From positions 33,356,001-33,420,000 of the forward strand of contig CM060734.1 of the NCBI GenBank assembly GCA_030704615.1: a DNA stretch of 64,000 nt, given 5' to 3'. Made by a program: the position numbers and the translations under genes. Of this stretch, positions 23,219-61,820 are shown piece by piece. The DNA is from Takakia lepidozioides (Eukaryota > Plantae > Bryophyta). The notes beneath the pieces were generated by a model. That model was not told the origin of the DNA and did no database searches. It saw nothing but the letters and a program-made list of their open reading frames with translations. Each line of letters begins with the position of its first letter. The stretch's first letter is position 1.

Positions 23219-24874
23219 ATGTCCAACTCGCCCAATAGCCGTTGGTTGCGTTCAGGTAGAAATAAGATATCTGCTGCTCCTGTGTTATCTCCAGTCACTG
23301 AGCCTCGACATAGGATTTTTGTAGAGTCAGATTTGGTATCAATGGAAGAAGGATTTAGTGGGGTTGATGGTAGAAATCAGGTTAGGGCTTCCAATGGTCT
23401 TGGACTTGCGGCAGCCACTAGCACCAGGCCTGGCTTGGGTGGTAGAATTCGGGAAAACTTGGATGTTGCAGATGATACGAGGGCCAACTTGTATGCCATG
23501 GATTTCCATGCACGACGGATGGATGGCTTGGATCGCATAGGGGAGTCACTTGCAAGTCAGCCTAGCATCTCAGTTTCGAGTTCCGCTCCACCGGCAAAAT
23601 TGAGGCCTATTTCATTGCATAACAATCCTCAATTTCAAGGTATGTCTATCACCTCCTCTCGTGCATTTCATCCTTTGTACGTGGCTAGTGAGTCCGCTTG
23701 GTCTGGCCCTGTGCAAAGCCAAGTGCTTGCACAAAGTCAACCAGCTCTTCAGTCTTGGTCCAGTACCCCACCTACTATAGTACCACTCTCCCGGGCTATG
23801 GGAGGGATGGCAGTTCATGAGGATGGAGGTACGAGGTCAAGTCACAATAATTTGGGAATTCAGCCAGTGGCTTTTCAGGGACATGTAGATGTTGGTCATG
23901 TATATCATGTAGCACCGGTGATTACTTATGCCTATCCTGAGTATAACATGGGAAAGAAGATAGAGAATTTTCTGGAATTGTTTGAAGTCAATGCTCAAAT
24001 GAACAAAGCTACGGAAGAGGTCATGATAGGTACATTTTGCATGAGCATGCAAGGAGAATTAAGTGATTTGTTGCATGTTGCTTTGAGTGGTGAAGAAAAC
24101 TTGACTTGGGCCAAGGTTAAAAGAAGAGCCATCATGATCTTTAAACCTGCGGAGAGGCCTTTGGATAGCCTTGATAAACTTTGTGGCCGGCCATACAAGG
24201 AGGGTGAGTCTCTTTGGCAATACTTTTTAGATCGAAGGGCTACTGTTGTTGAACAAGTGCCTGAAGATGTTGTTATTAGGGAGAGGTTACTAAGACAACA
24301 CTTCTTGAGAGGCATGCCAGCAGAAGTGAAAGCCTGGGGACAACGTCGTACTTTCAGGGATAGTGATGAGATGTTGCATGAAGTTAGTCTTAAGCTTAGG
24401 GACCTGGCTAAAGCAAAGCAAAGGCGACACCATGTGAAATTTCAAATCCCTTATATGGATCATGAAGACACCATGGCCGCCACATTTGATGAGAGAGAGA
24501 CCTCTCCTGTAGGATCTGAGTCTAGTGACTCTGCTTTGCAAGAATTGGCTCACACTGTGGATGAGTTGGGAAAAAGCATAGCTACTCAATTTGCAGCCTT
24601 GAAGGTTGATCAGCAAAGGACTGAGTGGAGACCCAGAGACCAGCAAAGAGCTGAATACAAACCCAGAGATCAGCAGAGAGGTCAAGGTGGAGGGTTCAGA
24701 GGTAAGACACAAACATGGGCTACTTATGAGAGGAAGTTTGCTCCTTGTTATATTTGTGGCAATGATGAGCATTACACTAAGGTATGTCCTGACCGTGAGG
24801 GCTATGCTGATTATATCAAAGAGAAGAAGAAGGCAGGGTCTTCCAACCAGGCTGCCCACACACATTTAAACTAA
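23219..24874 (+). CDS. Gag polyprotein, 551 aa
   Basis: Retrotransposon capsid-like segment (IENFLELFE...TWAKVK...EGESLWQYF...HFLRGMP), CCHC knuckle CYICGNDEHYTKVC, ends in HLN* over TTTAAAC. Confidence 0.9.
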   Translation: MSNSPNSRWLRSGRNKISAAPVLSPVTEPRHRIFVESDLVSMEEGFSGVDGRNQVRASNGLGLAAATSTRPGLGGRIRENLDVADDTRANLYAMDFHARRMDGLDRIGESLASQPSISVSSSAPPAKLRPISLHNNPQFQGMSITSSRAFHPLYVASESAWSGPVQSQVLAQSQPALQSWSSTPPTIVPLSRAMGGMAVHEDGGTRSSHNNLGIQPVAFQGHVDVGHVYHVAPVITYAYPEYNMGKKIENFLELFEVNAQMNKATEEVMIGTFCMSMQGELSDLLHVALSGEENLTWAKVKRRAIMIFKPAERPLDSLDKLCGRPYKEGESLWQYFLDRRATVVEQVPEDVVIRERLLRQHFLRGMPAEVKAWGQRRTFRDSDEMLHEVSLKLRDLAKAKQRRHHVKFQIPYMDHEDTMAATFDERETSPVGSESSDSALQELAHTVDELGKSIATQFAALKVDQQRTEWRPRDQQRAEYKPRDQQRGQGGGFRGKTQTWATYERKFAPCYICGNDEHYTKVCPDREGYADYIKEKKKAGSSNQAAHTHLN

Positions 24875-37718: not shown

Positions 37719-40196
37719 CTAGCAGATTTTGGCTTTCGAGAAGTCCATTTCCGGATGCTGGCAGCCACCCACAGATGAAGTATAAACATGAGAAATTCAA
37801 ATGAGAAATACAAGCAATAAACCATCTATCCTGCATTAATTTACTTCATTTGAATTCGTGGATACAGGAGATTCTCTCAACAGACTCACTATCACAACAC
37901 ATCATATAATTAAATAATCCCTATCATCCACTTCTTGGTAGAGGGGAGTTGCACACCTGAGACATGAATTTCTTCAGTATATCCTCCTTCTGCTGTTCAT
38001 CACTGGTTGGCAGGCCCATGGCTTTCTGCCTCTGATCATACTGCACACATCGATGATATGGTGAGGTTAAAATGTACTCAGTAGCCTAGGCTCTCCGTGA
38101 CTGACTGGAGACTGGACACTGAACACGAAAGCCGGGACGCATAGTAAAAAGGAACACATGGGATTTTGAGAAAGGGGTTGCTACTGCTATCACTGAAGTC
38201 TTACTCTTGTAGTCAAATCTACTATTGTAAATAGGGTGAACTTTGGCCCTCCAAACTTTGTCCAAAAAGCTCAACACTGTTATATACATTTCACATGAAG
38301 ATTCACCAAGAATTGGGATACAAGAGGGTCACAACCCCTAGTCGATCAAAACACTTTTGCTGCTCATGAACTGGACACCATTGAGTGAATTCGGATCATT
38401 GTTTGAGGTAACCACCATCCAACATTTAACTAAACCAGCAAAAGGTGAGAATCTTGAATCCAACCATCTGTGGCAAAGGAGTCATACTAGTATCAGTCAA
38501 ACAAGAAAGTGCATGTGCACTGATTACAGATTGCTATTGCTTTAAAAACTGTCAATTCTGATTTGCCACAAAGCTTCCATTGTAACAATGTCAAGCAGAA
38601 GGAGACCACATACCATCATCTTCTCGACGGTCTGGCGGGTCTCAGGGTCAAGATCACCCAGTTTGCTGTTTTCTGGCTCCACTTTCTGGGTGTTAATCTC
38701 AGGCTCTCCCTTCACAACAGCCCTCCACCACTCCATCTGGTTGTGCTTCGTCAGCAGAATTGACAGTGTCTTTCCATCCTCTGTACTCCACAGTCAAATC
38801 AGCTCAACATTACAGAAATGAAAGATCAAACATGCTTCCCCACACTTCTCAGTATAATCCCTGCATGTCTGGATGCTTAGAAAAGGGCCGGACGTGGGAT
38901 ACGGAATAGGAGACCAGAAGGCTCATTCCAGGGCATCTGAAGTGAATTGTTTCTGAGTAGCTGATTTCATCCATGAAGTTCTTGTACATAGCATTATATT
39001 GATGCAAACCCAAACTTCACACCAATAGAGGCCAAAGTCCTCATAGTGAATGAAGCTGGACGATTTCTCTGTGATGGTAGCATTTGTAAAAACCATCTGA
39101 GATACAACAAGGATGGAAATTACCTAGACTCCAGAAACAGTCATCCGCCTTCACTGGATTGTAAAGCTCCCCCTACATCAAAGATAAATTTGGAAATTGT
39201 AAGCGCCACTGGCATTGCACTCAGCACTCACAGCCCCAGTATGACACATTCAGCTCTGTCGAAACTAAAGAGAGGCAAGAGCTCACCTCTAAAACAGGAG
39301 GCTGACCCTTGAGACCTGCCTTGAGATGCTTCTTCTTGATCTCACACAGGATTGCCCTAGACTTCGTGCCCTCCGGCACAGGAAGGAGCACTGTCACTTC
39401 CGAAAGAGATTGTGTCCACGAATACTTTTCGTAGTCCGCCCCATTTCCAGCGTTCGGCTCTAGATGATCCAAAACAACCACGTTCATCAATGCACCGTCC
39501 ACTCCTTCACTGTTACGACAATTACAACAAGGCAAAAGAAATTACTAAGAGAAATTACGGATGACTAAGAGGTGGAAACGGGAACGTACTCAAGCCCTTT
39601 CCTTGTGTCTCCTCATCATCCTCATTTGGCTCCTCCACCATACTATCTGCTGCCGACTTCTTCTCCAAAGAATTTACTGCTGTCGAGTCGTCCACTTTAC
39701 TTGGTGTCCTAGACATTTCCTCTTTCTCAATTGCGCGGGGCTCCTCGACACGGGCAGTACCTTCTTGCTTTGCTGGGGCCGCTTGCGGAGGTGTTGAAAC
39801 CTTTTTAACGGCAGGATGCGGTACCGGGCTTTCATCGATTTTAGCGACTTTTCCGGGAGCTCCAGAAGTATCGTCCTCAGAGTAATCCCGCCTCCGCTTG
39901 GCAGCAGTAATAATATTCAACACCCGGCTTTCGACCCCGTCCTGCTTGGCCAGATCGGTCTCCCTCAGCAGAAACTCAACCACAGTCGTAAGAAGTTCCA
40001 GGGGATTCTGCCTGTGCTCTTTCAGAAGGTAACCCAACACCTCATCATGTGGTCTTTCACTGCCGGTGGCATCCGCTGGCCGCGACGAGTGTGGATCCGG
40101 CGGATCCTTACTCTCCTGAGCCAATGCCCCATCCGCTTGCACCTTCGCACTCTGTTGTGCCTCGCTCTCGTCCTCGTACTCTGATATCACAGCCAT
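37719..40196 (-). CDS. BOB1: BOBBER/NudC-domain co-chaperone
   Basis: Exons 40196-39590, 39459-39287, 39172-39124, 38780-38614, 38040-37957, 37757-37719. MAVISEYE start; [87 protein letters not shown]. Confidence 0.96.
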
Positions 40197-40907
40197 GGCT
40201 CTCCGCGCAGTGCGATCCGCAGAAACACGTCCGAAGGAAACGAGAAGCTGAAAGGAGAGAGACGACCTAGACACTAAAATACCGGTGTTCTTCCGGTTCC
40301 CAATAGCGGCTATGACCGGCACAAGCTTCCAAAGGCGCTCTAGCGCAGCAGCTGGGCACGGGCAACAGCCGGTAGCAGTGAGAGGACTTTCCCGCGTTGA
40401 TTGGAACGTTCGCGACTCTCGTCGCTAAACCTAACCCTAGCGGCCACTTCACGTTCCAAAAAGTAACCGTTTAATGCGTTACTAAACCACACCGCGGTTT
40501 GCTAACCTCTGACCTGAGTTTAGAGGGGGTTGGTTCTGCTACCATTTGTTTCCAACATAGGGGTAATATTCTTAGACCTTAAAAGTTCAATCAAATTGAA
40601 GTGCTTATAGTACCCAGCCATGGCCCTGTTGAGGATTTGAACCTAGCATACTACAGTCCTACCCATGGACTAGCTTATACAAACAATGTCCGCGCTCAAT
40701 TCTTCTTGCTTACGAAAGGGCGGCAAAAGGGTCTTTGTAAAATCGACGGAAATTCCTCATTGTGGAGAGAGCATACTCCAACAAGAATGCTCCATGACCG
40801 GAAGATAATAGAAATAATGTAAGAACTTAATGCACACGTGTAACCTTTGACAGGATGGTACGCCGGTTTCCGACATATCAAATCTTCCTCACCCTATCTT
40901 GACAGTG

Positions 40908-43179: not shown

Positions 43180-43950
43180 GGCCAGGGAACCTAGGAAACC
43201 ATATAGAACTTAGGGAACCGGGAACCAGTTACCAGATATTTTGGGTGTAACTTTAAATTTTTAAATTTGAAAACCTTTATTAAAAAAAAAAAACCCCCTT
43301 TTGATCTAATTTAAATGATTTAGAGCCTAATTGGTCATATCTTTGTCAAATGGACTCCGTTTGACTCAGTTTAGGGGGTATAGCTGCTGAAAGGGAAAAT
43401 CTACCTATCTAGACCTGGTTTTAGTTTTTTGGACTCTGCTAAAAATCTATGGAATTTTTTGAGTGTGAGTGTGCCATGAAAGATCCACAATTCTTTTTCT
43501 AGAATTTTGTGTGGTCTACATGAGAGATAAATCTGGGGATGTACTCCTTGTATGGCTGGGGGAAATAAGGACGTAATTGAAGGGCAGGTCTCTTCTCTTA
43601 GCCTGTGCACCCAAGGGGACAAGATTTATGTTTCTCAAGGAACTCAGACTGATTTGAGTGAAGAACAGTTGGACGAGTTGATTGCATACTTGGAGTCGGG
43701 CATTAGCAGTAGACAACAAACTGTTGTAGTTGGCGTTGAGGGCCTCAATATTGCTTTGGACAGTCAGAACTCTGTTGGAGCCAGCAGTTCTGCAGCTGTA
43801 GGTGAAATACCAAAATGGGTGAAAGCTAGGCTTGGAACACAGCCAAAGACAGCCCCGGGGACCAAGGTGTTCAGCCACAAGGCCGTGGTATACTGGAGCA
43901 GAGGAGCAGGAGCTACACAAGTTTGTGCAATCAGACATGGTTGCAGCCGG
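43180..43950 (+). mobile_element. Possible hAT 5' end remnant
   Basis: CAGGG start with clustered GGAACC/GAAACC motifs (43180-43226); downstream frame KWVK...GTKVFS...ATQV is only weakly BED-finger-like and lacks the Cys pair. Confidence 0.25.
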
Positions 43951-44679
43951 ACACGCTCTATACGAGGCAACCACGAGAGGGGGGTTATTAGCAATGAAAA
44001 GTTTATGCTGCTTGAAGGAGATGCAGTCATTCGCAATGAGGACACCCACAACCGTCTCAAAGCTTTCGAGTTGAGAGACTGTCAGACCCTACCTTTATTT
44101 TCTTTAGTGTTCAGTGAGCGGGAGATAGGGGAGTATTGTTTTGTCTCTACCTGGCAGAAAGAGGAGGAGGGTCTTGCTTGGTCGGGCTTCTATTCTTCCC
44201 CTCCCTCTCTTTACTATTTTCATTATTTTGTACTTGTAGTTGCCAAAGCCTCTCTTGGTGGAGGCCAGTCAGTCCGGGGTTTTGGGCTGGGATATTCTGT
44301 AGTATCAGCATTGCAGATAGATTTTGGTGTGGGGGTGTTGATGTTTTGATTTCTTGTGTTTGGATCCCCCCCAACACCTGCATGCTTGATTGTGCGTCAT
44401 GTTGGTTTTGTGTGGGCGCTTGCTTTCATAGGGATTAGGCCGGATTTGATCACCGGTCAATCCTAGAGTATGCTGTCGGTGGTGAGGCTGGAGTGATGAC
44501 CAGCAAGACCACCAGTGTTTCTTCTATGGTGAGACTGGGTTGATGACCAGCCAACCATAAGAGTTCTTGCGGTGGATGCAGGTGCAGGTGCCCTGAGCCA
44601 CTGGGATATGACCCTTAAACTGCAACAGGTGCCCACCCGTGTCACTATTGAAATTAGTACTAGAGCCTTATAGTGTCAC

Positions 44680-46190
44680 GTGGGGGAGATGCACATTGTG
44701 AGTGTCATCACGGAGTTATCCAAAGGTTTTGAGGGGAGTACGGCTACAAGCAGTAACAGTGAGAGTGGGTTCACAAGACAAGGTATTCGGTTCAGACCAC
44801 CTTCACCTCCACCCTCAACTAGTGCAGAGTCAGACACAGACTCGGAGGCTTTATCAACAGGTGTGCAATTTCATTTGCCATTGTTGTGGGACGACATGGA
44901 GGAGATGTATGGAGCTATCAAGGGGCCTCGTAGGTATTCTGGAGCTGTGGGCACAATTGAGCTGGATGACTTTATCCAGGAGTTCGACAGTTGGTGTGAT
45001 TTGCAGCAGATGCGCAATCCACAGCTGTTCACCCCATTCATGGCGTGGAAGGGACTGTTCCAGCATTTGAAAGGCCCGCCTATGGACGATTACCACGAGT
45101 TCAGGCGAGAACATGAAGCAGAGATTGAGGAGTGGAGGATGTATTGGTCACCTGACTACGTCTCCATTACTCGAGGCACGACGCGACCAGTAGCTGCATC
45201 AGCACCAATATCTCTCACTGCCAGCACTAGCAGTGGAACAAGTAGTGTCGGTACTTCTACATGTGGTACCAGTTCAAAAGGTGCTACTACTCCTCCTGCC
45301 ACGACTACAACACATGTGCCTAGATTCAACCCGGTGGTGGAGTTCTTCCAGGAGTTGCGGAGGACTACCAAGGTGTACGGACAGAGAAGCTGCGAAGTTT
45401 GCAAGACTTCCAGCGCAAACCCAGTGAGCCTGCGAGAGGCGTACACTCGTATGAGGCGCTTGATAAGTGTGACCCAAGGGGTTACTGAAGCTCAGGAAAT
45501 CCAGTTCTGGTATGGAATTTTGGACAAGGAGCTCAGGAGAAGGGTGCGGGATACAACCCTGTTACAAGCAGCCCAACCCACATTAGCAGATGTGTTTCTG
45601 CTGGCTGAGCGGATTGAGCTCAACATGGTGGAGGAGCGAGTTGTTACCATTGGATTTGGCAAAGACATGTCTGCACGAGGCGCAGCTGCCAGCCCACAGG
45701 CACAACGGACTGCCCAACAGCGTGATCAGGGGGGCAAGGTTTCCCAACCCAAATTTCATGGAGCTTACAGGGGACCTCAGGTGCAGAGGCCAGTAGCATC
45801 TTTTGCAAGCCAACAACAACCAGGGGTGATATGTTGGACATGTGGAGGACCCCATGTCAAGAGAGATTGCCCAGAGAGTGACAAAAGGCCGACACAAGCA
45901 CAGTCTGCACAGTTGCAGTGTGGGCATTGTGGCAAGTATGGGCATGGAGATGCCCAGTGTTATGACTTGCATCCTGAGTTGCGCCCAGACCAGTTCCAAG
46001 GGAACAATGGTGGCCGGGTGCGAGGTGGACCAGCCCAGAGAGGACGAGGTGGCCGGGCACGAGGTGCAGGCCAAGGGCAAGCTCAACATGGCCAAGTACG
46101 CGGAGGTTAGGGTGTTGACCAAGGCATGGCCAACCGGCTTCAGCAGCTAGAGCAAAGGCTCGCTGCCATGGCTACAGCTCAGGTGGTACC
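44680..46190 (+). pseudogene. Retrotransposon Gag with two CCHC zinc knuckles, truncated before pol
   Basis: IELDDFIQEFDSWCD...SLREAYTRMRRLI, CWTCGGPHVKRDC, CGHCGKYGHGDAQC, RGG-rich tail. Preceded by TAGTACTAGAGCC (~44655), a degenerate match to the iMet PBS TGGTATCAGAGCC. Confidence 0.85.
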
Positions 46191-46200
46191 GGCTCCCAGG

Positions 46201-46945
46201 CCCTTTTTCAAGGCTGCCAGGCTTGCAAACACACAGACGTGATGTGGTCGGGCTTCACCCCTTCCACCATCATTTGCTCATAGGTCTCCAAAGCCTCCAT
46301 CCCGCGCCCGTGCTGTGCATACCCTGCAAGCATCGTGTTCCACGACAACACATTTCATTCAGCCATATTGGTGAACACTAGGCTTCGCATTCTCGATGCT
46401 CCCACATTTGGCATACATGTCCACGGGGCATTGTTCAGAACCCCAAATCTCATTCAGCCATATTGTTGAACACTCCCTCCGCATCCTCAATGCTCCCACA
46501 TTTGGCATACATGTCCATGAGGGTATTGCTCAAAATCACATCTAGTACAATTCCAGCTTTGGGGATGCAACCATGCACCTCTTTGCCCTTTTCCAGGGCT
46601 GCCAGGCTTGCCACACACACTGCAAACGCACACAAACCTAATGTGGTCGGGCTTCACCCCTCCCCAATCATTTGCTCATAGGTCTCCAAAGCCTCCATCC
46701 CGTGCCCCTGCTGTGCCTACCCTGCAAGCATCGCATTCCACGACACCACATCTCGTTCAGTCAGAGTGTGGAAAACTCCCTCCACATTTGGCAAACATGT
46801 CCACCAGGGCAGTGTTCAGGATGACATCTGGGACAATTCCAGCTTTGACGATGTCATCGTGGACCTCTTTCCCCTTTCCCAGAGCTCCCAGGCTTGCACA
46901 CGTATTGCAAACACAAACAAATGTGATGTGGTTGGGCTTCACGTG
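46201..46945 (-). pseudogene. PLS-class PPR gene fragment (~3 P-L-S triplets, frameshifted)
   Basis: KPNHITFVCVCNTCASLGALGKGKEVHDDIVKAG..DVILNTALVDMFAKCG and NTLMDMYAKCGSIEDAEGVFNNM, VVSWN motifs; no E/DYW domain seen. Confidence 0.9.
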
Positions 46946-48179
46946 CCAGTGCCTGGGAATCCTAGAGAGGGGCTCTGCAAACCAAAAGCTCAGCTTGGGT
47001 GAAGTGTAAGTTGAGTGAAGAGGCTGAAAATGATGTGGGTGAAGAGAGGACAATATCAAGCCATGGGGATGGAAGGGCATCCAGCAGCCTTTTAGAAGAC
47101 AAAAAATATAGGGACTAGGCTGGCTTCGAAGACCAATACATTCGTAGCATCATAACTCCAATTTAGTACATGACATGAAGGGGTTCCCCTTTCACAACCC
47201 ACAGAACTGAACCCACAACCTGCGGCAATAGGAACAGGTCCTCCACCAATCAATGTAAATTGTTGTGTACAGTTTTACCAATTGCATAGGTAGTTTCTGT
47301 CCTTGGACAAGCCGGTGAGCCAATGTTGTGCCCTCAGGGAGCTCAACAAGAAAAAAGTTCTCTCCACCACCAATCAACTCTTTCACCACTTGTAAGTTGT
47401 CACCCTTCCGAGTTCACGTCCCCTGCAGGCAGCCACAACCATATCAAACCTCCCTGTGCAAATCTGGGATTTCAATCTACATAGATGGTCTGCTCTTATA
47501 CTGCAGAGTCTGGTATTCCCACCTAATTTCCCTCATCAATCTGAGATGCCTTGCAGGGCCTTTCACAGGCCTAACTGAGGGAAAGCGAGGTACACTGACC
47601 ACTCCCTGTTAATTGCTCTCAAGTGCACAAGTTCACATAGATGTTTGAAAAGCACCCGGACATGAGACATCAGCTATCATAAACCAATGAATCACTTAGG
47701 ACTCATAGCATACCGGCCGTCCCCAAGGCAATTGTGGGCTATAACTGACAAGGTTATGGAAGTCAACCCAAAAATTCCAGAGCCGACAACAACCTCTAAA
47801 CAATGACCTATATGAACACTTGCAGTGGCTCACTGCAGAGGTCATAAACATCTTACCAAGGTGGATGACTTGAAATTCAAACCCCACTTGTTTGGCAGCC
47901 GCTACAAACGCGGTCTCTGCACTTGATGCCTTCGCCAGTGGGATTGGGACTACCTGCATGCCATTTACCAGTAGTACAATACACTTTGAAGGTGGCATAA
48001 TCAAGGATAATTTACTTTATGCATCCCTAAGATTCGCATATCAGGAGCAAGAGAGTCTCATAGAGTCTGTTGCCCTACTGCCTTCTCACACATCATGTTT
48101 TCCTGCCCAACGAGCTCACTTCGAGAATTCAATATGCATCTCAGAACCAAGTTTGATGAGAGGGCAAAACAGGCTGAAA

Positions 48180-48680
48180 TAGGTCGAAGAAGGCTCATAT
48201 GTCTCCAAAGCATTCCTACCACATCCATGCTTGGTGAATCCTGCCATCATTATATTCAACGTGATCAAACCTCTTTCAGGCATTCTGCTTGGTGTGCATC
48301 CACGATGCTCCTGCACTTCACATATATGTTGACAAGGGTGTTGTGTAGAAAAACATTTGGCTTCAATCCCCATTGGATAATGTGAGGGTGCACCTGCTTC
48401 CCATATTCCAGGCCTTTCATCTTGATGCACTTCTGCAAGAGACAGACATAAGTATCTGAATATGCTGAAATGCTACAATTCCAGCTTTGCCGATGCAACC
48501 ATGGACCTCTTTGCCCTTTTCCAGGGCTGCCAGGCTTGCACACACACTGCAAACGCACACGTCGGGCTTCACCCCTTCCCCCATCATTTGCTCATAGCTC
48601 TCCAAAGCTTCCATCCGGGTTTCCCTGCAAGCATCGCGTTCCACGACACCACATCTCGTTCAGCCTGCATACTGTCGAGC
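48180..48680 (-). pseudogene. Second PLS-class PPR fragment
   Basis: ERDVVSWNAMLAG, CASLAALEKGKEVHG, GKQVHPHIIQWGLKPNVFLHNTLVNIYVKCRSIVDA; DNA near-identical to 46550-46760. Confidence 0.88.
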
Positions 48681-48885
48681 ACTCCCTTAGGATACTCTAT
48701 GCACGCACATTTGACATCGGTTTGACATACATTTCCACCGGGGCAGCTTGCAAGGTGAACGATGGCGGCAAACGCAGAGCTCAAGAACTTCAAACCGGCA
48801 ATCGGGCAGGCTTTGGAAAAACTTGGCGCTTTGGGGTTTTTCGGGCGGGCAATCCGGGCAGTATCCAATACATTTGACAACGATG

Positions 48886-49272: not shown

Positions 49273-49562
49273 GCAAGCATCCCGTCTTTGTAATCATATC
49301 AAGTTATCCAACATTTTGTTGAAGCCCACATCTATCGATGTGAGTAATTTATTGCGTCATATCATTGTGGGATCCACTTAAGCCAAGAATGTCATCATGT
49401 CAAGATATCCAACATTTGTTGAACCCCACATTTGTTGATGTTAATAATTTATTGCGTCACAGGAAAACTCAAGACGCGATCAATTACTCACATCAAGAGA
49501 TGTGGTCTTCAATAAGATGTTGGATATTTTGACATGATAATTACAAGAGATGGAATGCTTGC
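49273..49562. repeat. Fold-back with ~90-bp imperfect arms and an internal third copy
   Basis: 49273-49358 pairs with ~49473-49562; ~49393-49460 is a direct copy of part of the left arm. Confidence 0.85.
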
Positions 49563-52445: not shown

Positions 52446-54160
52446 TCAATATAACGTGTGGATTTGTCCAACATTAGACCCCAATTGTGTTAGAGCTTTA
52501 AGCTCAGCCACAAGATTTTGAAAGTTGGTGAACACAGATGCAAAGGCTATGTTTTCTTGATGGTCCTGCAGAGGATATTGGCGTAAAAAAATATAGAGGA
52601 CTTTTTCAAGTACCTGAATATTAGGAAGGAAGAATGACCCTGCTAGATGAAGCTGAGTTGGAGGCTGAACTAGTGTCCAAACCATGTCAGAAGCACAAAG
52701 AATAAAAAAGTTGACTATAAAATTTTCCTGAACATGTTTCAAGTTTGTGATATGGGTGAGGACCTTAAGGATGACCTGAAGGGCGTGCCTACCCTTGGCA
52801 CAAGACTGAAATTTAAACTCAGGATGGGAATCTAACTTTGAACAATAAACAGATGCAGAAATAAATGGAGAGTGTACATGTCGGACATGCTGGCAGCCTC
52901 CATTTTCATAAAGTGGTGGGTAATCTAATCAAAGAGCGACTTAGCCTATTCAACAGTACGATTTTGCTTCCAATATAGGGTATTTGAAACCATATATACA
53001 AACAAAGAAAGAACAGTAGAGCAGTCTTGATCCCTTCCATAGGCAAATGACAGCTAAGCTCAACCATAAATACGTACCATAAATAAGTACCATAAATGAT
53101 AAATCATTTGATGAATTCAATTATAACCTCCTCCAACTCATGAATATGAGACCATCTAACTTAGAACATATCCAAAGATAACCATGTTGGAGTGTTCTTC
53201 ATAAGAAGAAACCAGCTTACAAGTTCAGACAGTGTGATGTCTTCAACTGTGTAGCCTTCACTTTGCAGGCTGCTTTCTAGTGTTTGCACATGATGCAGCC
53301 AACCAACACATATTCATGGATTTGATGAGCATGTAAACTTCACATCATGGAACTTTGTGATCTGATCTTCCCCTTCCTTTATCTCTCCATGTGGCATTGT
53401 GGCCCTCTTTCCAATAGGTATGTCTGGTTGTGTCCTCGTGTAGCCAACAAGTTGTATGATCTTTGAAAAGCCTAGAAGTAATGAAAACTGCTCTAGCATA
53501 AGTGTAGGAATTCAAAAGGATGTCCAGAGCAGTCCTGATAAACAACTGAGGAAATTTTGATGGCAAACTACCACCTCAAACATGATTTGTAGCCAAGTAT
53601 CTATTCCGATAGGTGTGGTGGATAGTAGCACCAACTCTAGTCCAAAGCTAATCTGCAGCTATCATTGCCTATGTCGTTTCACAATAGAATATCAGAAGTA
53701 ACATGTGGATATATATAGTTTCATTGCTGCCCATGATGAGTACATAATAACTTGAGTCTGTAAAGAAAATGGATCACACCTATGACTTCTACTACTTATA
53801 CGTAAATTGAAATTGTTTGAACCCACGTGTTGGTGCTTTGCAATCCATTAGTTGGATCAATCGCCTTTTGAGCTTGAGATACAAAGTATCTAAGTATTAC
53901 GTCTTGTAGAAGTCGGTTATAGTATTTGACCTCCTGCATCGACAAATTATGTTCAAATGTTCAACTCCAAACAATCTATTTAAATGAGCCATATTAAAAT
54001 ATTTCAGAGATATAGTATGTACAGAGTCCACATGTCTGTACATACACCAACATAAGAAAAGATCAGCAACATGCTGTACTTGTGCCCGCAACTTATTTTC
54101 GTCTAGACACATAGAAACAAGTTGCTCTGTGTAATCGGTACATACACCAAGAAGATGAAA
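52446..54160 (-). pseudogene. Unknown multi-exon protein gene, disrupted
   Basis: Protein-like open blocks (~52446-52930, 53220-53670, 53800-54160) separated by AT-rich intron-like gaps; scattered TAG/TGA stops consistent with C>T decay. Confidence 0.45.
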
Positions 54161-55189
54161 TCTTTATGCGCAATGAAACTTACACAGTCTGTCACGCATG
54201 CATGAATACTGCATGAACTATTCATCCGGTCCAGGGGATGCTATCCATTACAAATATGGGCAAAATATTCCCACTACACCACTCTCGATCTAATTCGGAA
54301 CTTAATTGCAAGTGCCGGTGCTAAGCATCAAAAGCCTTTGCATAGTCCTACCATCCTAAGGCAGGGAAAATAAATTGAACTCACATGAAAAACATCGATA
54401 ATTTGTATATATTCTTTTGGAAAAAGTTGTCATATCTTAAATTGGAGATATATAAAGACAAACAAGAAAAGAGAGAAGAGGGGGAGAGATACTGCTGAGT
54501 TGTGTCAGGATGTTATGGGATCAAATAAATGATGCATTTGTTTTTTGCATATATTGATGATCTACTTTTGACATTGAGCTTGAATAGCGGTGTCCGAACT
54601 AGCCACTTGAGAACAATTGCTTCTGGTGTTTGAGGGAGTTTTAAAAATCACGGTAAATATATAATACATGTTGACTGTAAACTGGCGGTTGTTTTTTTTA
54701 GGAGTTCGCAGAACAGACGCATCATGCTGGTCACTTCCTGTGTTGATGGTTTGGCTCATGGACTAGGTTTTTGGGTACATGTACAAGTAGACTGGTTTTC
54801 TCGGATATTATCTCTTGGCCTGAGCACAATCTTTTTTTTGTCCGTGTATTCGATGGGGGGTCGGGAGATATTGACCCAATGCCTGATCCAAATCGTGAGC
54901 CATACCTTTGGGCTTGTTTCTCTTTCCTCTTTTGGTATAGAGAGCTCTCTAGTGGATCTCTCGATCTTTGGATCTTGAGGAATGGAAATGGCCTAAAAAC
55001 GTTTTTTTTTTTAAATACTCGGCCAAGCTGAGATACTCCATGACCTTGCACCTCCTTGTTCCTACCACCAAATGGGTCGCTTACAAATGGATCTGTGTCA
55101 TGCCATTCTCGGTAAATTGGGAAGCAAAGTGAAAACATATATGGGCATCCCAAAGAGCAGCTAAAATCTCTAATTTTCTATGGAAGATA

Positions 55190-55560
55190 GGAAACAAGAT
55201 TCTACTAGTTGGATCCTCCATGGACCCTCAAATTGCTTGTACCATTTGCAATATGGGGCTGCCTGAGTCTCTGGAGCATTGTCTATTAGGTGCCGGTATG
55301 CTGCTTGCGTTTGGTCACGAGTCAGAGCCTTCTATCTTGCTTGGAAGCCAGCGGATGCGTCTAGGTGAGGTAATTGCAAGTCCTTGCACACTTACTCTTG
55401 GACACTTACTACCAAAAGGAAAGTCCCACCCCATTGCGATAGGCTCATTTGCTCTCACAGTCTTGTTAAGAAAATTTAATCCTAAATTTGTCAAAGCGTG
55501 AGTTCTTAGTGCCTTGGAGCATTTTGCTTTTGCCGCCATGACCTATTAGATTCAATGTTG
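55190..55560 (+). mobile_element. LINE zf-RVT fragment
   Basis: CTICNMGLPESLEHCLL, similar to CRCCNNQLLDSLEHCLLHC in the LINE at ~59.9 kb. Confidence 0.65.
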
Positions 55561-56005
55561 CTATGTTGTACCTAGTTCAACATCAGTTTGAGTTTCACTT
55601 CAGCATCGCAAATACATATTTGACGAACTGAAGTAATATCACACAAAGATAGAAGGATGCGAGACCACTTCTAAACTTAAGTGGAATAACAAGCCTATGT
55701 TTAGTTGCATGTAGCAATAAAGTAACAGTCAATTTTTGAATAACTTTTGATTATTTTGAATAGTAAACATGTACTAATTTAGTTCATAAAATACTATAAC
55801 TTTGATAACTTAACTTTTAATAATTTTAATTTAGGTGATGACTAAAAAGATGGTAACTAAAAATAACTAAAAAGATGATTAAAATATAAAAGATAAACTA
55901 ATACAATTTTATAAATGTAGAACATGTGAATATAGAGCATTGTTTCTGAGATCTACCTTATTCTTGTTAGTGTCATATTTTTGAGATTGTAGGTGGAGAG
56001 GGCAT

Positions 56006-57509
56006 GTGAAAACTATGGAAGATATAACAAGTACATCTAGCAAAAGAAAACGGATTCGTAAACCTTACATTACACTTTTGAGCGGTCAATACGATGAAGA
56101 ATTCGGTACTATCAGGCTAGAATATGAGTTTACGGGAATTGCTGGGTGTTGTAATCCAAGCTGTCGTGCGAAACATTGCATATTAAATGTTTTACCTTGT
56201 CCAAAAACATTGAGTGATAGAACCATTTACGAGCTTTTCCAGAAAAAGTCAGAAGGAACTGTGCCTTTGGAACGTATAATATTATGGATTAGAAGCCATA
56301 AATTATGCGAGAGATGTGTTTCTCTGTTGAGAAACAGATGTCCAAGTTGTTTGCCCTCTCCATGGCCATCTTCATTTGATTCCTTCAGAGAGTTTTTTAA
56401 AGATGTTTATTAATTAGTGATGTACCCGTTATCAGTACAAGTGAATTCCGAAATGTTGTTTTCTACGCTTTGTCTCAAAAATCTCTTCATATAGATGTAG
56501 ATCACATAGTAGTGAAATCTATAGTTACTGGAGGATGTATTGGTTCAGTTGAGTTAATCAGGAAGCTAGGACTACCAAACAATAAAGAGATCCATGTAGT
56601 ATACAATATTATTCCTAAAGATGGTAAAGGCGTTTCTCCATACTGGTTACATACAGAGACAAAAGATACGTGGAAGGCTCTTATCTCAAAAGCATATCCG
56701 ACCACCACGTTATTTATTGTGGTATTTGATGGAAATACTATATGGTGTGAAGATTTGTATGTGAAGGAGTTTGGAGATTTTGGAGAAAATGAGGTACATT
56801 TAATGTACTTACGGAATTTGTTGGAAATGACAGATGCTCGTGTTTTACGATCTAAAATGCACTCTTATTTTCTTTTAGCACCTTACAGAGGACGGAGTGG
56901 AACAGACACAAGACGGAGGCATGGTGTATCAAAAAGCAATGGATACACATGTTCTACAAATACAGATGGAAACACAGATAGATAGACAAGCGGTCAAGTT
57001 ACAAGTGCAGAAGAAGTGTCATTTCGTGATTTGGGCGATGCAATTGCAAGTAATATTTGGAGAGGAGTTCAAAAGAAATATCCATTATTTATTTCCAAAT
57101 TGTTTGAAGCTCAAATACAAACTGCGAAATTTATTAGGATTGGTTTACCCTGGTTCATGTGCACCAATTGCATATGACAAAATCAACTGAGATTCCAACG
57201 CATGTGGATACTGCTGATGATGAGTTCTCAATTATTTATTGGGTAAAGCGGGGATCACTCGGAGAGGGAGATTTTTTGGTGAATCAATTGATGGACAAGT
57301 TTGAGACAACCGACGCATCTTCTATATTCATTCGATCAAAAAAACTTGCACATAGTACATTAGAGAGTGCGGGTGTTATATGCTCTAGTTTCAAATTAAG
57401 GATTGCTTTACTAAACAAAAAGCAAGTGTTGACTAGAACTAGAAATATAGTGAATAGGAAAGTTGCTTTAAAAGACTCCTCAAAAATGAATCATGGTGGT
57501 ACACATTAG
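56006..57509 (+). pseudogene. Cys-rich protein with C-terminal TET/JBP-like 2OG-Fe(II) dioxygenase domain (2 frameshifts, 1 stop)
   Basis: N-terminal Cys clusters CCNPSCRAKHC...CP and CERC...CPSC. C-terminal PTHVDTADDEFSIIYW...GEGDFLV...F.....SIFIRSKKLAHST...KLRIALL gives the HxDxxD ... H-S/T double-stranded beta-helix pattern. Confidence 0.6.
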
Positions 57510-58892
57510 GTGATGAGGATGATAAATGAGATTTCTGATTATATTTTATTTACTTTAAAGTATTTCATACAAATGACAAACTATGTATATGAATGAAGAC
57601 ATCATTCTTATGGGTGAATTACATTTGATTATTATTTTGAATGGTTAGTGCATATGCAAAGCAATATATCTCAATGGAAGATATAAAAAATAAATATATC
57701 CAGAAAGGTACTTAATAGTTTAGGACGGTCAATCTTTTGGGTATGTTATGTGTTAGTTCAGTTCATGCCTAGTATGTGAGATGTAGCCAGACTACTCCTT
57801 TGATTAGCCCCTGACAATACCTGATATTTGAGGTATAGCCAGGCTGTCATGATAGCGTCGTACTAGGCTGGGGTAGTGATTGGTAACTAGTGAGTGGTGA
57901 GGGAGTCTCTCATGGCTGCGCTGGGGTAGTGACTAGTGAGGGAGGCTGTCATGGCCATGCGGGAACAACCGTAGCAGGCCGGATGGTACAGTAACCGTGC
58001 AGGGCGAGGCGTAGGCCGCGGACATCCATGCACGTGGGCGCTGCCAATGTTCAATGCACCTGGCCTGTCTCTTCTTCCCTACTCTGCGGCCATCTCAGGT
58101 TCCATTCTTGTAAGGCGAAGCAAGTTGTTAGATCCATTCTTTATTGAATTGACAGTCATTCTATTAGTGCCAAATATTTCAGCCAAAATGAAGTAATCTA
58201 TTTGGTAGCTCCTCTGGAAGTGATTTCAAGGGGATTCAAAAGACCTTCAATGGTTAATTAACTAGGTTTAAGTAGGATAAGGGTAAAATAAATAGAAATG
58301 TATGTAAGGGTTTCAGATAAATTGGTAACATACCCATTAACCCAAACAAATCTTAATAATAAAAAATAAAAATAAAAAATTTCAAAATATAACTTGAGCA
58401 TAATAATCAATGCTTAAAAATTGATATTCAATCCAAAAATTGTAAGAACAAAATATAGGCACATGTGCAAGGTAGCACCTAGTAAACCGCAATAGTACCT
58501 CCATTATTTATTACTTTGAGATTTGCTTGAAGTACAGTTCAATGAGCAAGGGAATGCTGCTGTGGGTAGAAAATCATAATGATAGTCAACAAGCTATTGA
58601 CTTGGATTCCATCACCCAACAAGAAAATCATGACCTGCCCTAAGGATTGGGTAAATACTAATATTTTACCCTTCACCCGGGTTCACTCTAGGCCCCGTCC
58701 AAGCCTAGGTCCGGGAAGAATATACAAGATTCCCTTGATAAGGGTCCAAGTAAAAGTAAGGGATCTACCTGTAACAAGGATTATCTGTAAAATAATTGTG
58801 GAAAAAGATAAAGATAAAGGTAAAGTTTCTTTAACATCCAGAGAATTTACAGAGCCTACTCCTCAACACACAGGCCATCGAGGAGGTCTGAA

Positions 58893-58978
58893 GGCACTCG
58901 TTGAAGGATTGAACCCAGGATCACCTAGGCACATGGCAGGCACAAACACCCAACCATTGGGCTACCTGCTCAAGTGCC
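58893..58978 (-). mobile_element. tRNA-like SINE head (Gly-GCC-like loop)
   Basis: GGCACTTG...TAGCCCAATGG (A box)...CTGCCAT...GGTTCAATCC (B box)...CGAGTGCC; termini pair over 8 bp but spacing is not that of a canonical tRNA. Confidence 0.6.
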
Positions 58979-59003
58979 GAAATGTCTTAAAAAGAAAACA
59001 TAG

Positions 59004-61820
59004 TTTTTTTTTTTTTTTTTTTTTGGGACGAACCCCTGAGAACTTTATTAAATGATTATTTAAGGGGAAAAAAATTAAAACCCTTTAAATGCCCTCAGGC
59101 TGCCATAAGGCATAACACACGGAGGACCATGCAGGATAGGTCCGAGACCATAACCGAGAGAGGACTCTCGAATGAACTGCATTTAGAACCCACAGGGACT
59201 CGATGCCTTTTCTAAAACCTAGAAGACCTTGGTAAGATCCGCCAGAAACCATTATCCGTAACGGAGGTAAGACTGGATCTACGATAGTGGACAGAACTGA
59301 GAATAGGGAAGCAGAAAGATGGTGAGGGTGCATGGAGGAGGCTGGGAGAGCAGGAGAATAGCAGGGCGAATCTGATTGCTAATTGCCTGCCCTGAAGAGA
59401 GCCAAGAGTCTATCTGTGGAAATGAAGTCGAGTTGCTGAACCTGCTCTAATATGCCTCCAATTAATCTCTGTTCTGTCAAATTCTGGGGAGGTTGAAGAG
59501 GTAACTCCTACTTCCTTGCCAGCAGGAGAGGATTGAATGTGCCCAAAGACAGGTGAGGCCAACAACTTTGCAAATGAGTCCGTGCTTGCCCCAGGTTGCT
59601 CCGAAGGTATGGATGAGAGAGGGTTGTCTTTGTGGCTTCCTTTTGACCGCTGCACATAGCACTGCCCAAGCTTTTTTAGCAGCAACAATGAGATCAAAGA
59701 ACACCATAGAAAGAATATCTAAAGCTGCTGTGTCTCATTGTCTAGAGCCTAGGCACATTGTCCTTTCCAAAGGCTCCAGAGGACCGAACTACGAAGAGTA
59801 TCAAATACAGGGCAGTGGGAGGCAATTGTTTTTTGTGTCGGACTGTAGTTGAGAAGGATAGCTACTGGATCGGCAGGCATTTGGTCCCAAGCCCTGTAGA
59901 AGGAACGTACCAATGGCCAGATCTTTGACGGGGCCAGGCAGTGTAGCAGACAATGTTCCAAAGAATCTAGCAATTGGTTGTTGCAACATCTGCAGAGCAG
60001 AGCCTCAGGGAAGTTTAAATAGTGGCCCACTTTAAGCACCCTATTAGCTACCTGCCATAAGAAGGCACTTAATTTTGCCGGTTTTGACTTGCTTCAGACA
60101 ACTGACCAAATACCTTTCCACTTCTCTTGATCAAAATTCACATGGCTCCATTTCCGATTCCATTTGGAGTTTAGAGGCCTAGCAGCCAGCATTGCCATGT
60201 ATCCCTTCTTTGCAGTATATGAAAAGAAGGGCTTTAGCTCCTCCTCAAAAGACCAAGACCATTCCGCCGGGTCCAACTGGAGGGCCGAATTTCCCAGCAG
60301 GATAAAAGAGCCAAGCATGAATGGAGGTACCCATGGGTGCCTTGGGGTTGAAGGGTTTACCCGGGTCCGACCATTGACAAATCCGGACAAGGGCAGTACT
60401 GGCTGAAGTACGAGCTGGTAAGGATATTGGGCTAGCTGTGATGAGCGAGAGGCATCCAGTTGTGTCATCAGCCTGGAATGAGAACCCTGAAATGGTGGAG
60501 ACTGTGACATCTGAAATATAGATAATATGGTTGGGAATGGAAGAGTCGGGCATAATCCATTGATGAGGACTAGGGAGTCCAAGGCCGTCTTCAAGAATCT
60601 GCTTCCAAGTGTCAGGTATTGACTGAATTATGTGGTTTATGCCCCAACGTAGGCGGAGGGTTCCCAAAGGGATTGCGGAGTACTATACCATAGGTCTTTA
60701 ATCGAGGAAAAACCTCTTGACTCCCACACCGCCCAACGCTTTGCTGCCCGACGTTCATCCCTATCCGGGTTTGGAAGATTTAGAAAGAGGCATTGTCTTA
60801 GAGTTTCTTGAAAGGTGGTAGGCTGCAGTTTTCTGAGAAAGGGCCTGAGGCTGCTCCATGATCTCCAGATGGAGGACCATAGGGGGGAGCCTGTGGATTT
60901 GTGACCAAACCCTTGGACAATCCAGCGAGTAGATTGTGACGAGAGGACTGCGGTCGAGGGCGAGGAGGAGCAGATGGATGGGGTGACCATGAATTTCCAC
61001 CAGCCTCCCTCTGGTCCTTGGTATCTTGGGAGCCACTTTCCTAAAAGCACTTTGATTTGAGTCTCTAGGTCAAGGACACCTAAGCCACCTATCTTTTTGG
61101 GAAGGCAAATCTGTTCCCATGAGACCTATGGCTTTTTGTTCTGGGTAGTAGAGGCAGCCCCCCAGATGAAGTTCCTGATCAACCTTTTAACCTCCTTAAT
61201 TATTTTGTTGTTAGGCCCCCAGGTAGACGCAAAATACCAGATGCCCGCAAGGCTGATTTGATTGGCAACCAGGGCTCTTCCAGCGATGGAAAGATGGCAC
61301 GAGCCCCAATAAGAAAGCTGGTGCTTGAGTCTTTTCACCGTGGCTTGCATTCTCTGGTCATCTGTCAAGTTGATACCAAATGTGTGACCCAGCAATGTAG
61401 TGGGCTCGCCTTCCTTGAGCCAAGTTAATCCCAGGTGGGCGCCCCAGGTCGGATTGCTTCCTATGGTAGACTTGGAGAGGTCACCTAAAATAAGGGCTTT
61501 AGTCTTGCTCCAATTCACTTTGAACCCTGAAACACTACAAAAGTTGGACAGGGTATCTACCGCTGCTTCCAGGGATGATTGGTTGGCTTCGAGAAGAAGG
61601 AAGGTGTCATCTACGAATATGGAGTCCTTAACCTGACGCCAAATGCCAGTTCTGTGATTCTGCAGCTTAAGCCCTTTGACTTGAGGATTTTCCTCTAGCA
61701 TGTAGCCCAGAGCATCCGCCATGAAAAGGAAGAGGAAAGGGGCGAGTGGGCATCCTTGTCTTACTGACATTTGGAGCTAGAAGGGCTTGGAAAGGTGACC
61801 ATTAATTGAGACCCTGCTTT
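59004..61820 (-). mobile_element. 5'-truncated L1/Tx1-type LINE (RT C-terminus, zf-RVT, poly-A)
   Basis: SVRQGCPLAPFLF, FVDD, SGFKVNWSKT, LSIAGRALVAN, ICLPKKIGGLG, CRCC..LEHCLLHC; T21 run at 59004-59024 is the minus-strand poly-A. Confidence 0.92.

Follow-up and report, generated by a model that had tools for sequence, protein, structure and literature searches.

A stretch of 64,000 nucleotides from the genome of the bryophyte Takakia lepidozioides (GenBank assembly GCA_030704615.1, contig CM060734.1, positions 33,356,001 to 33,420,000; below referred to as the window, with all positions counted from its first letter) carries a broken gene at 56015–57509 of the forward strand. We consider this locus to be very probably a decayed, single-exon copy of a CMD1-like TET/JBP gene family in which the active-site residues have been kept, and assign to this reading a probability of approximately 0.85. 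An earlier note, made from the letters of the window alone, had described here a TET/JBP-type gene, which it took by inference to be pseudogenised and borne by a transposable element, possibly as an anti-silencing system. The locus itself contributes a ‘dated fossil’ and an estimate of copy number; the value of the finding lies in the family.

Following six-frame translation of the locus, with all three forward frames read over 55500–58200, the gene was found to be spread over three frames as four open pieces, designated A to D, with two shifts and one in-frame TAG (Table 1). Each piece was searched separately. All four were aligned to P0018, an intact metagenomic protein of 556 amino acids encoded by one open reading frame (ORF) on a 2.3-kb contig (L001) of an ENA metagenome, with E-values of 0.016 for piece A, 8e-11 for piece B, 5e-7 for piece C and 1e-18 for piece D. 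Because the pieces align to P0018 in order, their joining into one gene is real and not arbitrary. The three joined frames, the shifts and the TAG at 56983–56985, as originally read, were borne out by the translation and by this colinear alignment, and the motifs quoted at that time (DLGDAIASNIWRGVQKKYP, HQLHMTKSTEIPTHVDTADDEFSIIYW, GEGDFLV, IFIRSKKLAHST and KLRIALLNKK) were all present in the translation. The gene was thereby confirmed within its first boundaries except at the start, where GTG 56006 has been replaced by ATG 56015; the latter is the likely start codon, because the MED... that it opens resembles the MEEN, MEGG and MDDN beginnings of relatives. Within piece B, APYRGRSGTDTRRRHGVSKSNGY is the counterpart of APY...RG.Y.S.SHGY in the relatives, and piece C holds the helical stretch SFRDLGDAIASNIW...FEAQ...IRIG. 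The gene is present in a single copy in the 64-kb window, as no second one was found there.

An exhaustive HMMER search with piece D among 1.84 billion proteins gave 16 matches, 15 of them true relatives, the best with an E-value of 1.2e-11, and the similarity is therefore far beyond chance. The remaining match, P0013 (960 amino acids), belongs to a bacterial protein built of repeats and carrying a Por secretion tail, and was dropped as a spurious repeat match. Eleven further relatives came from a profile word search, whereas a word-index search with piece D and with the whole of P0018 gave no match, owing to the length window of that index, in which the relatives are present as fragments. The relatives number approximately 30; in the protein collections they are unnamed or annotated as ‘hypothetical protein’, and none has a Pfam domain assigned. 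Intact members of the family, of approximately 515–556 amino acids, are predicted to begin with a basic N-terminus, to continue with a Cys/His module of weak likeness to RING fingers, and to have an Fe(II) dioxygenase domain at the C-terminus.

The N-terminal module is seen in piece A as a basic stretch, SSKRKRIRK, followed by G-C...P-C...(C)HK-x-C-x2-C...C-x2-C...F-x-D. Five sequences share the invariant G-C, P-C, H-K-x-C-x2-C, C-x2-C and F-x-D after the basic stretch, and the Cys before HK is Ser in the locus copy. The best matches of an N-terminal profile in the PDB were RING fingers, namely TRIM32 (E 0.034), then TRIM56 and MAT1, with E-values of 0.034–1.3 for the three, and one relative matched zf-RING_2 weakly (E 0.0085); Pfam gave nothing else meaningful for the N-terminal alignment. 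The match is to the second half of the module, (C)H-x2-C-x2-C...C-P-x-C, and the first C-x2-C pair of a C3HC4-type pattern is not evident. These weak but coherent signals suggest that the module may be RING-like.

Likeness to CMD1 and the active site

A profile built from 16 family sequences matched CMD1 of Chlamydomonas at an E-value of 7.6e-8, the only significant match in the PDB. With a profile of 26 sequences CMD1 was matched at 8.6e-6, and the alignment reached back into the helix DLGDAIASNIW, this helix of piece C being aligned by the wider profile to residues 660–680 of the CMD1 chain. The next matches of both profiles were to haptoglobin at E-values of 0.2 or worse, that is, noise. 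Neither AlkB, P4H nor any other oxygenase appeared in the match lists of the profile searches against the PDB, even at an E-value of 10, and NgTET1 and TET2 were not among the matches in these searches. The alignment of the profiles with CMD1 spans approximately 75–120 residues, and identity is low. A separate comparison by language-model features was made for the relative P0021, which is 35% identical to piece D: PF12851 Tet_JBP is assigned to 26 of the 30 Atlas clusters nearest to it (score 0.96, with 203 of 256 features shared). The predicted placement of the family within the TET/JBP superfamily, as a divergent branch with Chlamydomonas CMD1 as its nearest known member, is well supported.

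The TET/JBP assignment of the earlier note was thus upheld by profiles whose only significant match in the PDB was CMD1. The comparison with profiles that it had proposed came out in part as expected, with CMD1 matched and AlkB and P4H absent, while the Pfam Tet_JBP model remained unmatched. The best matches in sequence and profile searches were not 2-oxoglutarate (2OG) oxygenases acting on targets other than nucleic acids, which the same note had named as evidence to the contrary.

Residues were paired from the HMMER alignments and counted by column among 30 aligned family sequences; CMD1 numbers follow from an offset of 374 in the fusion chain, so that His719 is His345 and His771 is His397. 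In CMD1, iron is bound by His345, Asp347 and His397, and Asp350 forms a hydrogen bond to N4 of 5-methylcytosine (5mC), with Asp234 of NgTET1 and Asn1387 of TET2 as its equivalents (PMC7854593). The Trp358 side chain lies where TET2 and NgTET1 have their 2OG-binding Arg, and it clashes with 2OG (PMC7854593). In CMD1 this Trp fills the site of the 2OG carboxylate, with no Arg reaching the co-substrate, as in an ascorbate-using enzyme; the family, with Trp in the aligned column, may share the arrangement. The locus HVDTAD aligns in register with HLDTDD of CMD1, and the Fe(II) triad His-x-Asp...His is retained both in the locus and across the family. Loss of HxD or of the distal His among paralogues, which would have spoken against the first description, was not observed (counts in Table 1).

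The Lys of KLRIALLNKK had initially been regarded as a possibly decayed Arg. It proved instead to be the norm of the family, in which this column holds Lys in 22 and Arg in 2 of 29 relatives. Judged from spacing, with K/R-x5-V-x-K in the family and Arg410-x5-Phe416-x-Arg418 in CMD1, the column, which follows the distal His, would correspond to Arg410, at the place of the Arg that binds the C5-carboxylate of 2OG in TET2 and NgTET1.

Table 1. Features of the TET/JBP-like locus, with positions in the window; relatives are counted by alignment column
Feature	Position	Strand	Description
Repeated unit	~55690–58620		Gene plus ~330 bp on its upstream and ~1.1 kb on its downstream side; ends approximate
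Piece A	56006/56015–56410	+	Frame 2, closed by TAA 56411–56413; aligns to P0018 13–124
Frameshift 1	within 56401–56410	+	Frame 2 to frame 1; assumes one single-base event
Piece B	56401–56982	+	Frame 1; middle region and N-terminal part of catalytic domain; aligns to P0018 177–360
In-frame TAG stop	56983–56985	+	P0018 open through the same region
Piece C	56986–57174	+	Frame 1, closed by TGA 57175–57177; aligns to P0018 380–426
Frameshift 2	~57141–57160	+	Frame 1 to frame 3; GLPW precedes the shift and VHVHQLH follows it
Piece D	57138–57506, stop TAG 57507–57509	+	Frame 3; catalytic core; aligns to P0018 425–525
His	57201–57203	+	CMD1 His345; 23/26 relatives
Asp	57207–57209	+	CMD1 Asp347; 23/26 relatives
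Asp	57216–57218	+	CMD1 Asp350; column with D 20, N 5 of 25 relatives
Trp	57240–57242	+	CMD1 Trp358; Trp in 26/30 relatives
Distal His	57351–57353	+	CMD1 His397; 28/29 relatives
Lys	57393–57395	+	Column with K 22, R 2 of 29 relatives

Several weaker matches were set aside. Short Pfam matches to Replitron_C, APOBEC1 and SpoIVA_C (E of approximately 0.1, over 18–70 residues) were put down to chance. DUF4365, suggested for piece B by the Atlas (0.84), was under the lead threshold, and two PDB matches, TRAPPC3 for piece B (E 0.27) and PTS IIA for residues 1–300 of P0018 (E 0.025), were rejected for want of a consistent pattern.

Copy number and spread of the family

Five sequencing runs contain the whole or a part of the stretch, four of them from one sample and the fifth a ‘plant metagenome’ with one tenth of the sampled words; contigs were placed on 53500–59400 of the window at a likeness of at least 80%. 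In the DNA run X1, the summed depth over the flank 54682–55272 is approximately 55 and comes from one identical contig, which ends at 55691. Over 55667–57636 it rises to 270–1240, and it remains at 167–288 onward to 58621. Several 1.5-kb contigs of this run cover the gene and differ from it in approximately 15–20% of letters, with gaps. As this depth is 5–20 times that of the single-copy flank, we take the genome to contain roughly 5–20 look-alike copies of a unit of approximately 2.9 kb, in which non-coding flanks have been amplified together with the gene. Fragments 99% identical over 57158–57637, such as one at 57158–57350 with a single difference, were also seen in run X5, the plant metagenome, which belongs to an unrelated study; that sample therefore contained this plant or one very close to it.

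Among metagenomes, ENA sample ERZ25073694 holds at least five copies (in L002, L007 and L008, and two in L009) on long eukaryote contigs. The 356-kb contig L002 has an Auxin_BP (ABP1-type) gene at 529–774 on the reverse strand, besides its TET-like copy, and is therefore from a green-lineage eukaryote. All loci except L001 carry stops or frameshifts, and a scan of metagenome loci with the family alignment gave two loci, both broken.

For unsaturated pairs of relatives, the ratio of non-synonymous to synonymous substitutions (dN/dS; Nei-Gojobori, with codons mapped via tblastn) was 0.13–0.45, a rough figure; for the locus copy against the others it was uninformative, with synonymous sites saturated. 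On this rough measure, purifying selection acted on the protein through much of the history of the family, its copies dying afterwards. The earlier note had proposed a search for intact paralogues and their dN/dS: P0018 is intact and the ratios are below one, but nearly all other copies are broken. This birth-and-death turnover fits the genes of mobile elements and fits a fast-turnover host family as well.

Genes of this kind are known as passengers of mobile DNA. In Chlamydomonas, 10 of 11 TET genes lie on a cut-and-paste transposon (which has two CMD1 copies) or on a Helitron (bioRxiv 10.64898/2026.10.09.758095), and in fungi, DNA transposons of several superfamilies carry TET/JBP genes along (PMC12730594). 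The analogy is a strong one; that the family studied here likewise spreads as mobile-element cargo and helps elements to resist silencing by 5mC has, in our estimation, about an even chance or slightly better. The multi-copy stretch agrees with the description of the gene as transposon-borne, and four observations speak against it. Around the repeated unit, inverted or direct terminal repeats were represented only by short pairs at chance level. Neighbouring ORFs contained no transposase domain by Pfam. Inspection by eye near 55668 and near a hairpin at 58674–58716 revealed no A|TC...CTRR|T pattern of Helitron ends. Lastly, the paralogues of ERZ25073694 are similar at the DNA level in their ORF only. 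Defined termini or a linked transposase were accordingly not found at the locus, whereas co-amplification of non-coding flanks, with 5–20 times the flank depth over approximately 55690–58620, was.

The foremost alternative is an ordinary host gene family whose copies arose through segmental or tandem duplication within repeat-rich DNA and later decayed, with neither cargo nor anti-silencing involved. We judge it a serious competitor, albeit with odds against it. It accords with the lack of a transposase or terminal repeats at the locus and with the five copies of ERZ25073694, which share the ORF alone and have nearby repeats at differing distances and orientations, and a dN/dS below one would suit a useful host protein just as well. 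On the other hand, a recent amplification is indicated by the approximately 5–20 copies, which are at least 80% identical and take in 1.1 kb of non-coding flank; almost all copies are broken, as is typical of mobile-element genes; and transposons carry the nearest relatives to have been characterised, those of Chlamydomonas and fungi.

An endogenous viral origin, from giant or Polinton-like viruses, by which the locus would be a relic of viral insertion rather than of a transposon, we regard as improbable. Most of the Atlas clusters nearest to the family are labelled as viral (Uroviricota and Nucleocytoviricota), but these taxon labels rest on few members, no viral hallmark gene was detected in the ORFs scanned around the locus, and the repeated unit measures just 3 kb or so.

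The surroundings of the copies in ERZ25073694 are rich in repeats, which vary in distance and orientation. Ty3/gypsy and integrase-like (rva_4) genes lie within 4–7 kb of some copies, in no constant arrangement. A dispersed repeat of 2.4 kb (L002 8828–11237, L008 2097–4504 and L007 14604–15256) is situated a few kb from three TET-like copies, again with differing orientation and distance, and a palindromic repeat of 280–500 nucleotides was seen near all four loci of this sample; these repeats may be components of a carrier element or neighbours by chance. The flanks of the Takakia locus showed no DNA similarity to any of the relative loci fetched, and an Rfam scan of the whole window gave no match.

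Other repeats were recorded in the window itself. A short high-copy element at 58811–58976 (wider limits 58622–59212) has a depth in X1 of approximately 84,000, against approximately 55 in the flank, and is abundant also in runs X6 and X7; a T run follows at approximately 59004–59025, and the element may be SINE-like (resembling a short interspersed nuclear element) or a similar short repeat. The sole Pfam match near the locus is a reverse transcriptase fragment, RVT_1, at 61129–61770 on the reverse strand (E 8.7e-11). Cys/His tails of the form C-x2-C...LEHCLL at 59749–60039 (reverse strand) and 55220–55501 (forward strand) resemble, by eye, the zinc-finger end of ORF2 of plant long interspersed nuclear elements; they were not confirmed by Pfam, and both face the TET-like unit, from opposite sides.

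Farther from the gene, four ORFs, at 23219–24874, 44680–46110 and 43552–44349 on the forward strand and at 39555–40322 on the reverse strand, encode 551, 476, 265 and 255 amino acids, respectively, and match no Pfam family at an E-value of 0.01. Direct repeats of 30–120 nucleotides, in families D1–D7, occupy 46200–48750 at spacings of approximately 95–400 nucleotides and recur approximately 1.5–1.9 kb off; this patchwork suggests a tandemly structured element adjoining the ORF of 476 amino acids. At 49293–49538 there is an inverted repeat of 66 nucleotides, with arms 85% complementary and 114 nucleotides apart, which overlaps direct repeats of 100 nucleotides at 49289–49459 and may be a small foldback element or one resembling a miniature inverted-repeat transposable element.

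Weighing the assignment and the state of the gene

A number of results weigh against the assignment to TET/JBP and against the decay of the gene. When the four pieces and 15 relatives were scanned with Pfam at E-values up to 10, neither Tet_JBP (PF12851) nor any other meaningful model was matched. Piece D alone, searched against the PDB, had as its sole match the CMD1 of Chlamydomonas fused to maltose-binding protein (7CY4), at a weak E-value of 0.13, and the assignment is hence transitive, by way of the family profile. The HMMER alignment to CMD1 ends just past His397, short of Arg410. Two AlphaFold2 models, of P0018 residues 240–556 (26 sequences) and of P0021 (30 sequences), had a mean predicted local distance difference test score of 39 and 35, respectively; they are unusable and lend no support to a double-stranded beta-helix fold. 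As regards decay, the frameshifts were read from the assembled sequence, and the absence of transcripts in runs X6 and X7, described below, is weak evidence.

We read the silence of the Pfam PF12851 model as divergence beyond its reach. A precedent exists in fungal TET/JBP proteins of the PE type, which are too divergent for standard profiles and from which CMD1 was reached only at an HHpred E-value of 1.4 (PMC12730594). The same silence, together with the lack of a usable structure model and the matching of one PDB family only, could mean that the likeness to TET/JBP is convergent or marginal and that the protein, be it some other Fe(II) oxygenase or not an enzyme, does not have DNA as its target; the RING-like module could even hint at a role directed at proteins. 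We consider this very improbable in view of the profile E-value of 7.6e-8 over approximately 75–120 residues, in which the catalytic and base-contacting residues of CMD1 are all in register, of the independent language-model search with Tet_JBP in 26 of 30 neighbours, and of the absence of other oxygenase families from the matches even at an E-value of 10.

Returning to the decayed copy of a CMD1-like gene as the favoured reading, the copy at the locus is unable to make the protein, being interrupted by two frameshifts and a stop; three nearly invariant glycines have been replaced as well (GG to EG, HGT to HST and KLG to KLR), a loss which fits relaxed constraint. These lesions support the pseudogene recognised in the first description. 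The first shift can be placed within 56401–56410, because frame 1 opens at 56401 after TAA 56398–56400 and frame 2 ends at TAA 56411–56413. At the second, frame 3 is open from 57138 onward and frame 1 until its stop at 57175–57177, and the two flanks of the shift are adjoining residues in P0018. Introns are excluded at both shifts, since conserved residues abut on each side. Runs X6 and X7, which are by guess RNA and are both small and available as contigs only, had zero depth over 55470–58620, although neighbouring repeats were covered, and so gave no sign of transcription.

It is likewise very improbable that the gene is alive and encodes a working enzyme, with the shifts and the stop due to assembly errors, short introns or recoding: there are merely three lesions, T runs (56393–56398 and 56406–56408) adjoin the first shift, the contigs listed include none that is identical, derived from reads and continuous over the lesion sites, and run X1 holds 78% of the sampled 31-mers and lacks 22%, but the abutting conserved residues leave no space for an intron, the three glycines are replaced in the locus copy alone or almost alone, X6 and X7 have no transcript contig over the locus, relatives elsewhere are broken alike, and no indel in 56000–57600 was among the contig indels listed.

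Proposed function and comparison with known systems

Judging from residues shared with CMD1, a 5-methylpyrimidine, most likely 5mC, would be flipped into the iron site of the intact protein and there altered at the methyl group. The co-substrate might be 2OG, with 5-hydroxymethyl-, 5-formyl- and 5-carboxylcytosine as products, or ascorbate, with a base like 5-glycerylmethylcytosine; the sequence is compatible with either. A wider proposal, which we put forward tentatively and hold to be rather unlikely in its entirety, is that non-seed land plants possess a living CMD1-like TET/JBP family with a RING-like module, spread by mobile elements, which converts 5mC into an oxidised or glyceryl-type base and so permits escape from silencing. 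Were this true, land plants would have a second route of 5mC modification besides the DME/ROS1 glycosylases, one used by selfish DNA and of which the Takakia locus is a fossil, and the pattern known from fungi and Chlamydomonas, where such enzymes multiply with mobile DNA, would extend to land plants.

To our knowledge, plants are usually said to lack the TET/JBP family; oxidised methylcytosines have been measured in plant DNA, and we know of no enzyme that makes them. The family makes this question testable, with its complete CMD1 active-site signature, an intact member in P0018, purifying selection and many copies. A search of the literature on TET/JBP in land plants, moss, Physcomitrella and bryophytes found no description of it, with a passing mention in Iyer 2013/2014 being possible.

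Compared with the TET/JBP enzymes of PF12851 (TET1-3, NgTET1, CcTET and JBP1/2), the family has the same HxD...H triad and the Asp or Asn that contacts N4 of cytosine, and its relative P0021 groups with PF12851 clusters by language-model features. Unlike animal TETs, it has neither a CXXC domain nor the animal-type Cys-rich insert, and the Pfam model is unmatched. From CMD1 (PDB 7CY4–7CY8) the plant family differs in its own N-terminal RING-like module and in having mostly Lys at the position that would correspond to Arg410. It is like CMD1 in its His-x-Asp, the Asp at +3, the Trp 8 residues past that Asp and the distal His-Gly-Thr, all in register, and also in being a multi-copy family, since CMD1 too is present in several copies in its genome and within a transposon. 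In contrast to the cargo TETs of fungi and Chlamydomonas, no transposase or element ends were tied to the locus or to the five copies of ERZ25073694; nevertheless, like those of fungal transposons (KDZ, hAT, IS3EU etc.) and of the transposons of Chlamydomonas (a Helitron and a large cut-and-paste element), the family has expanded to many copies, mostly in repeat-rich DNA.

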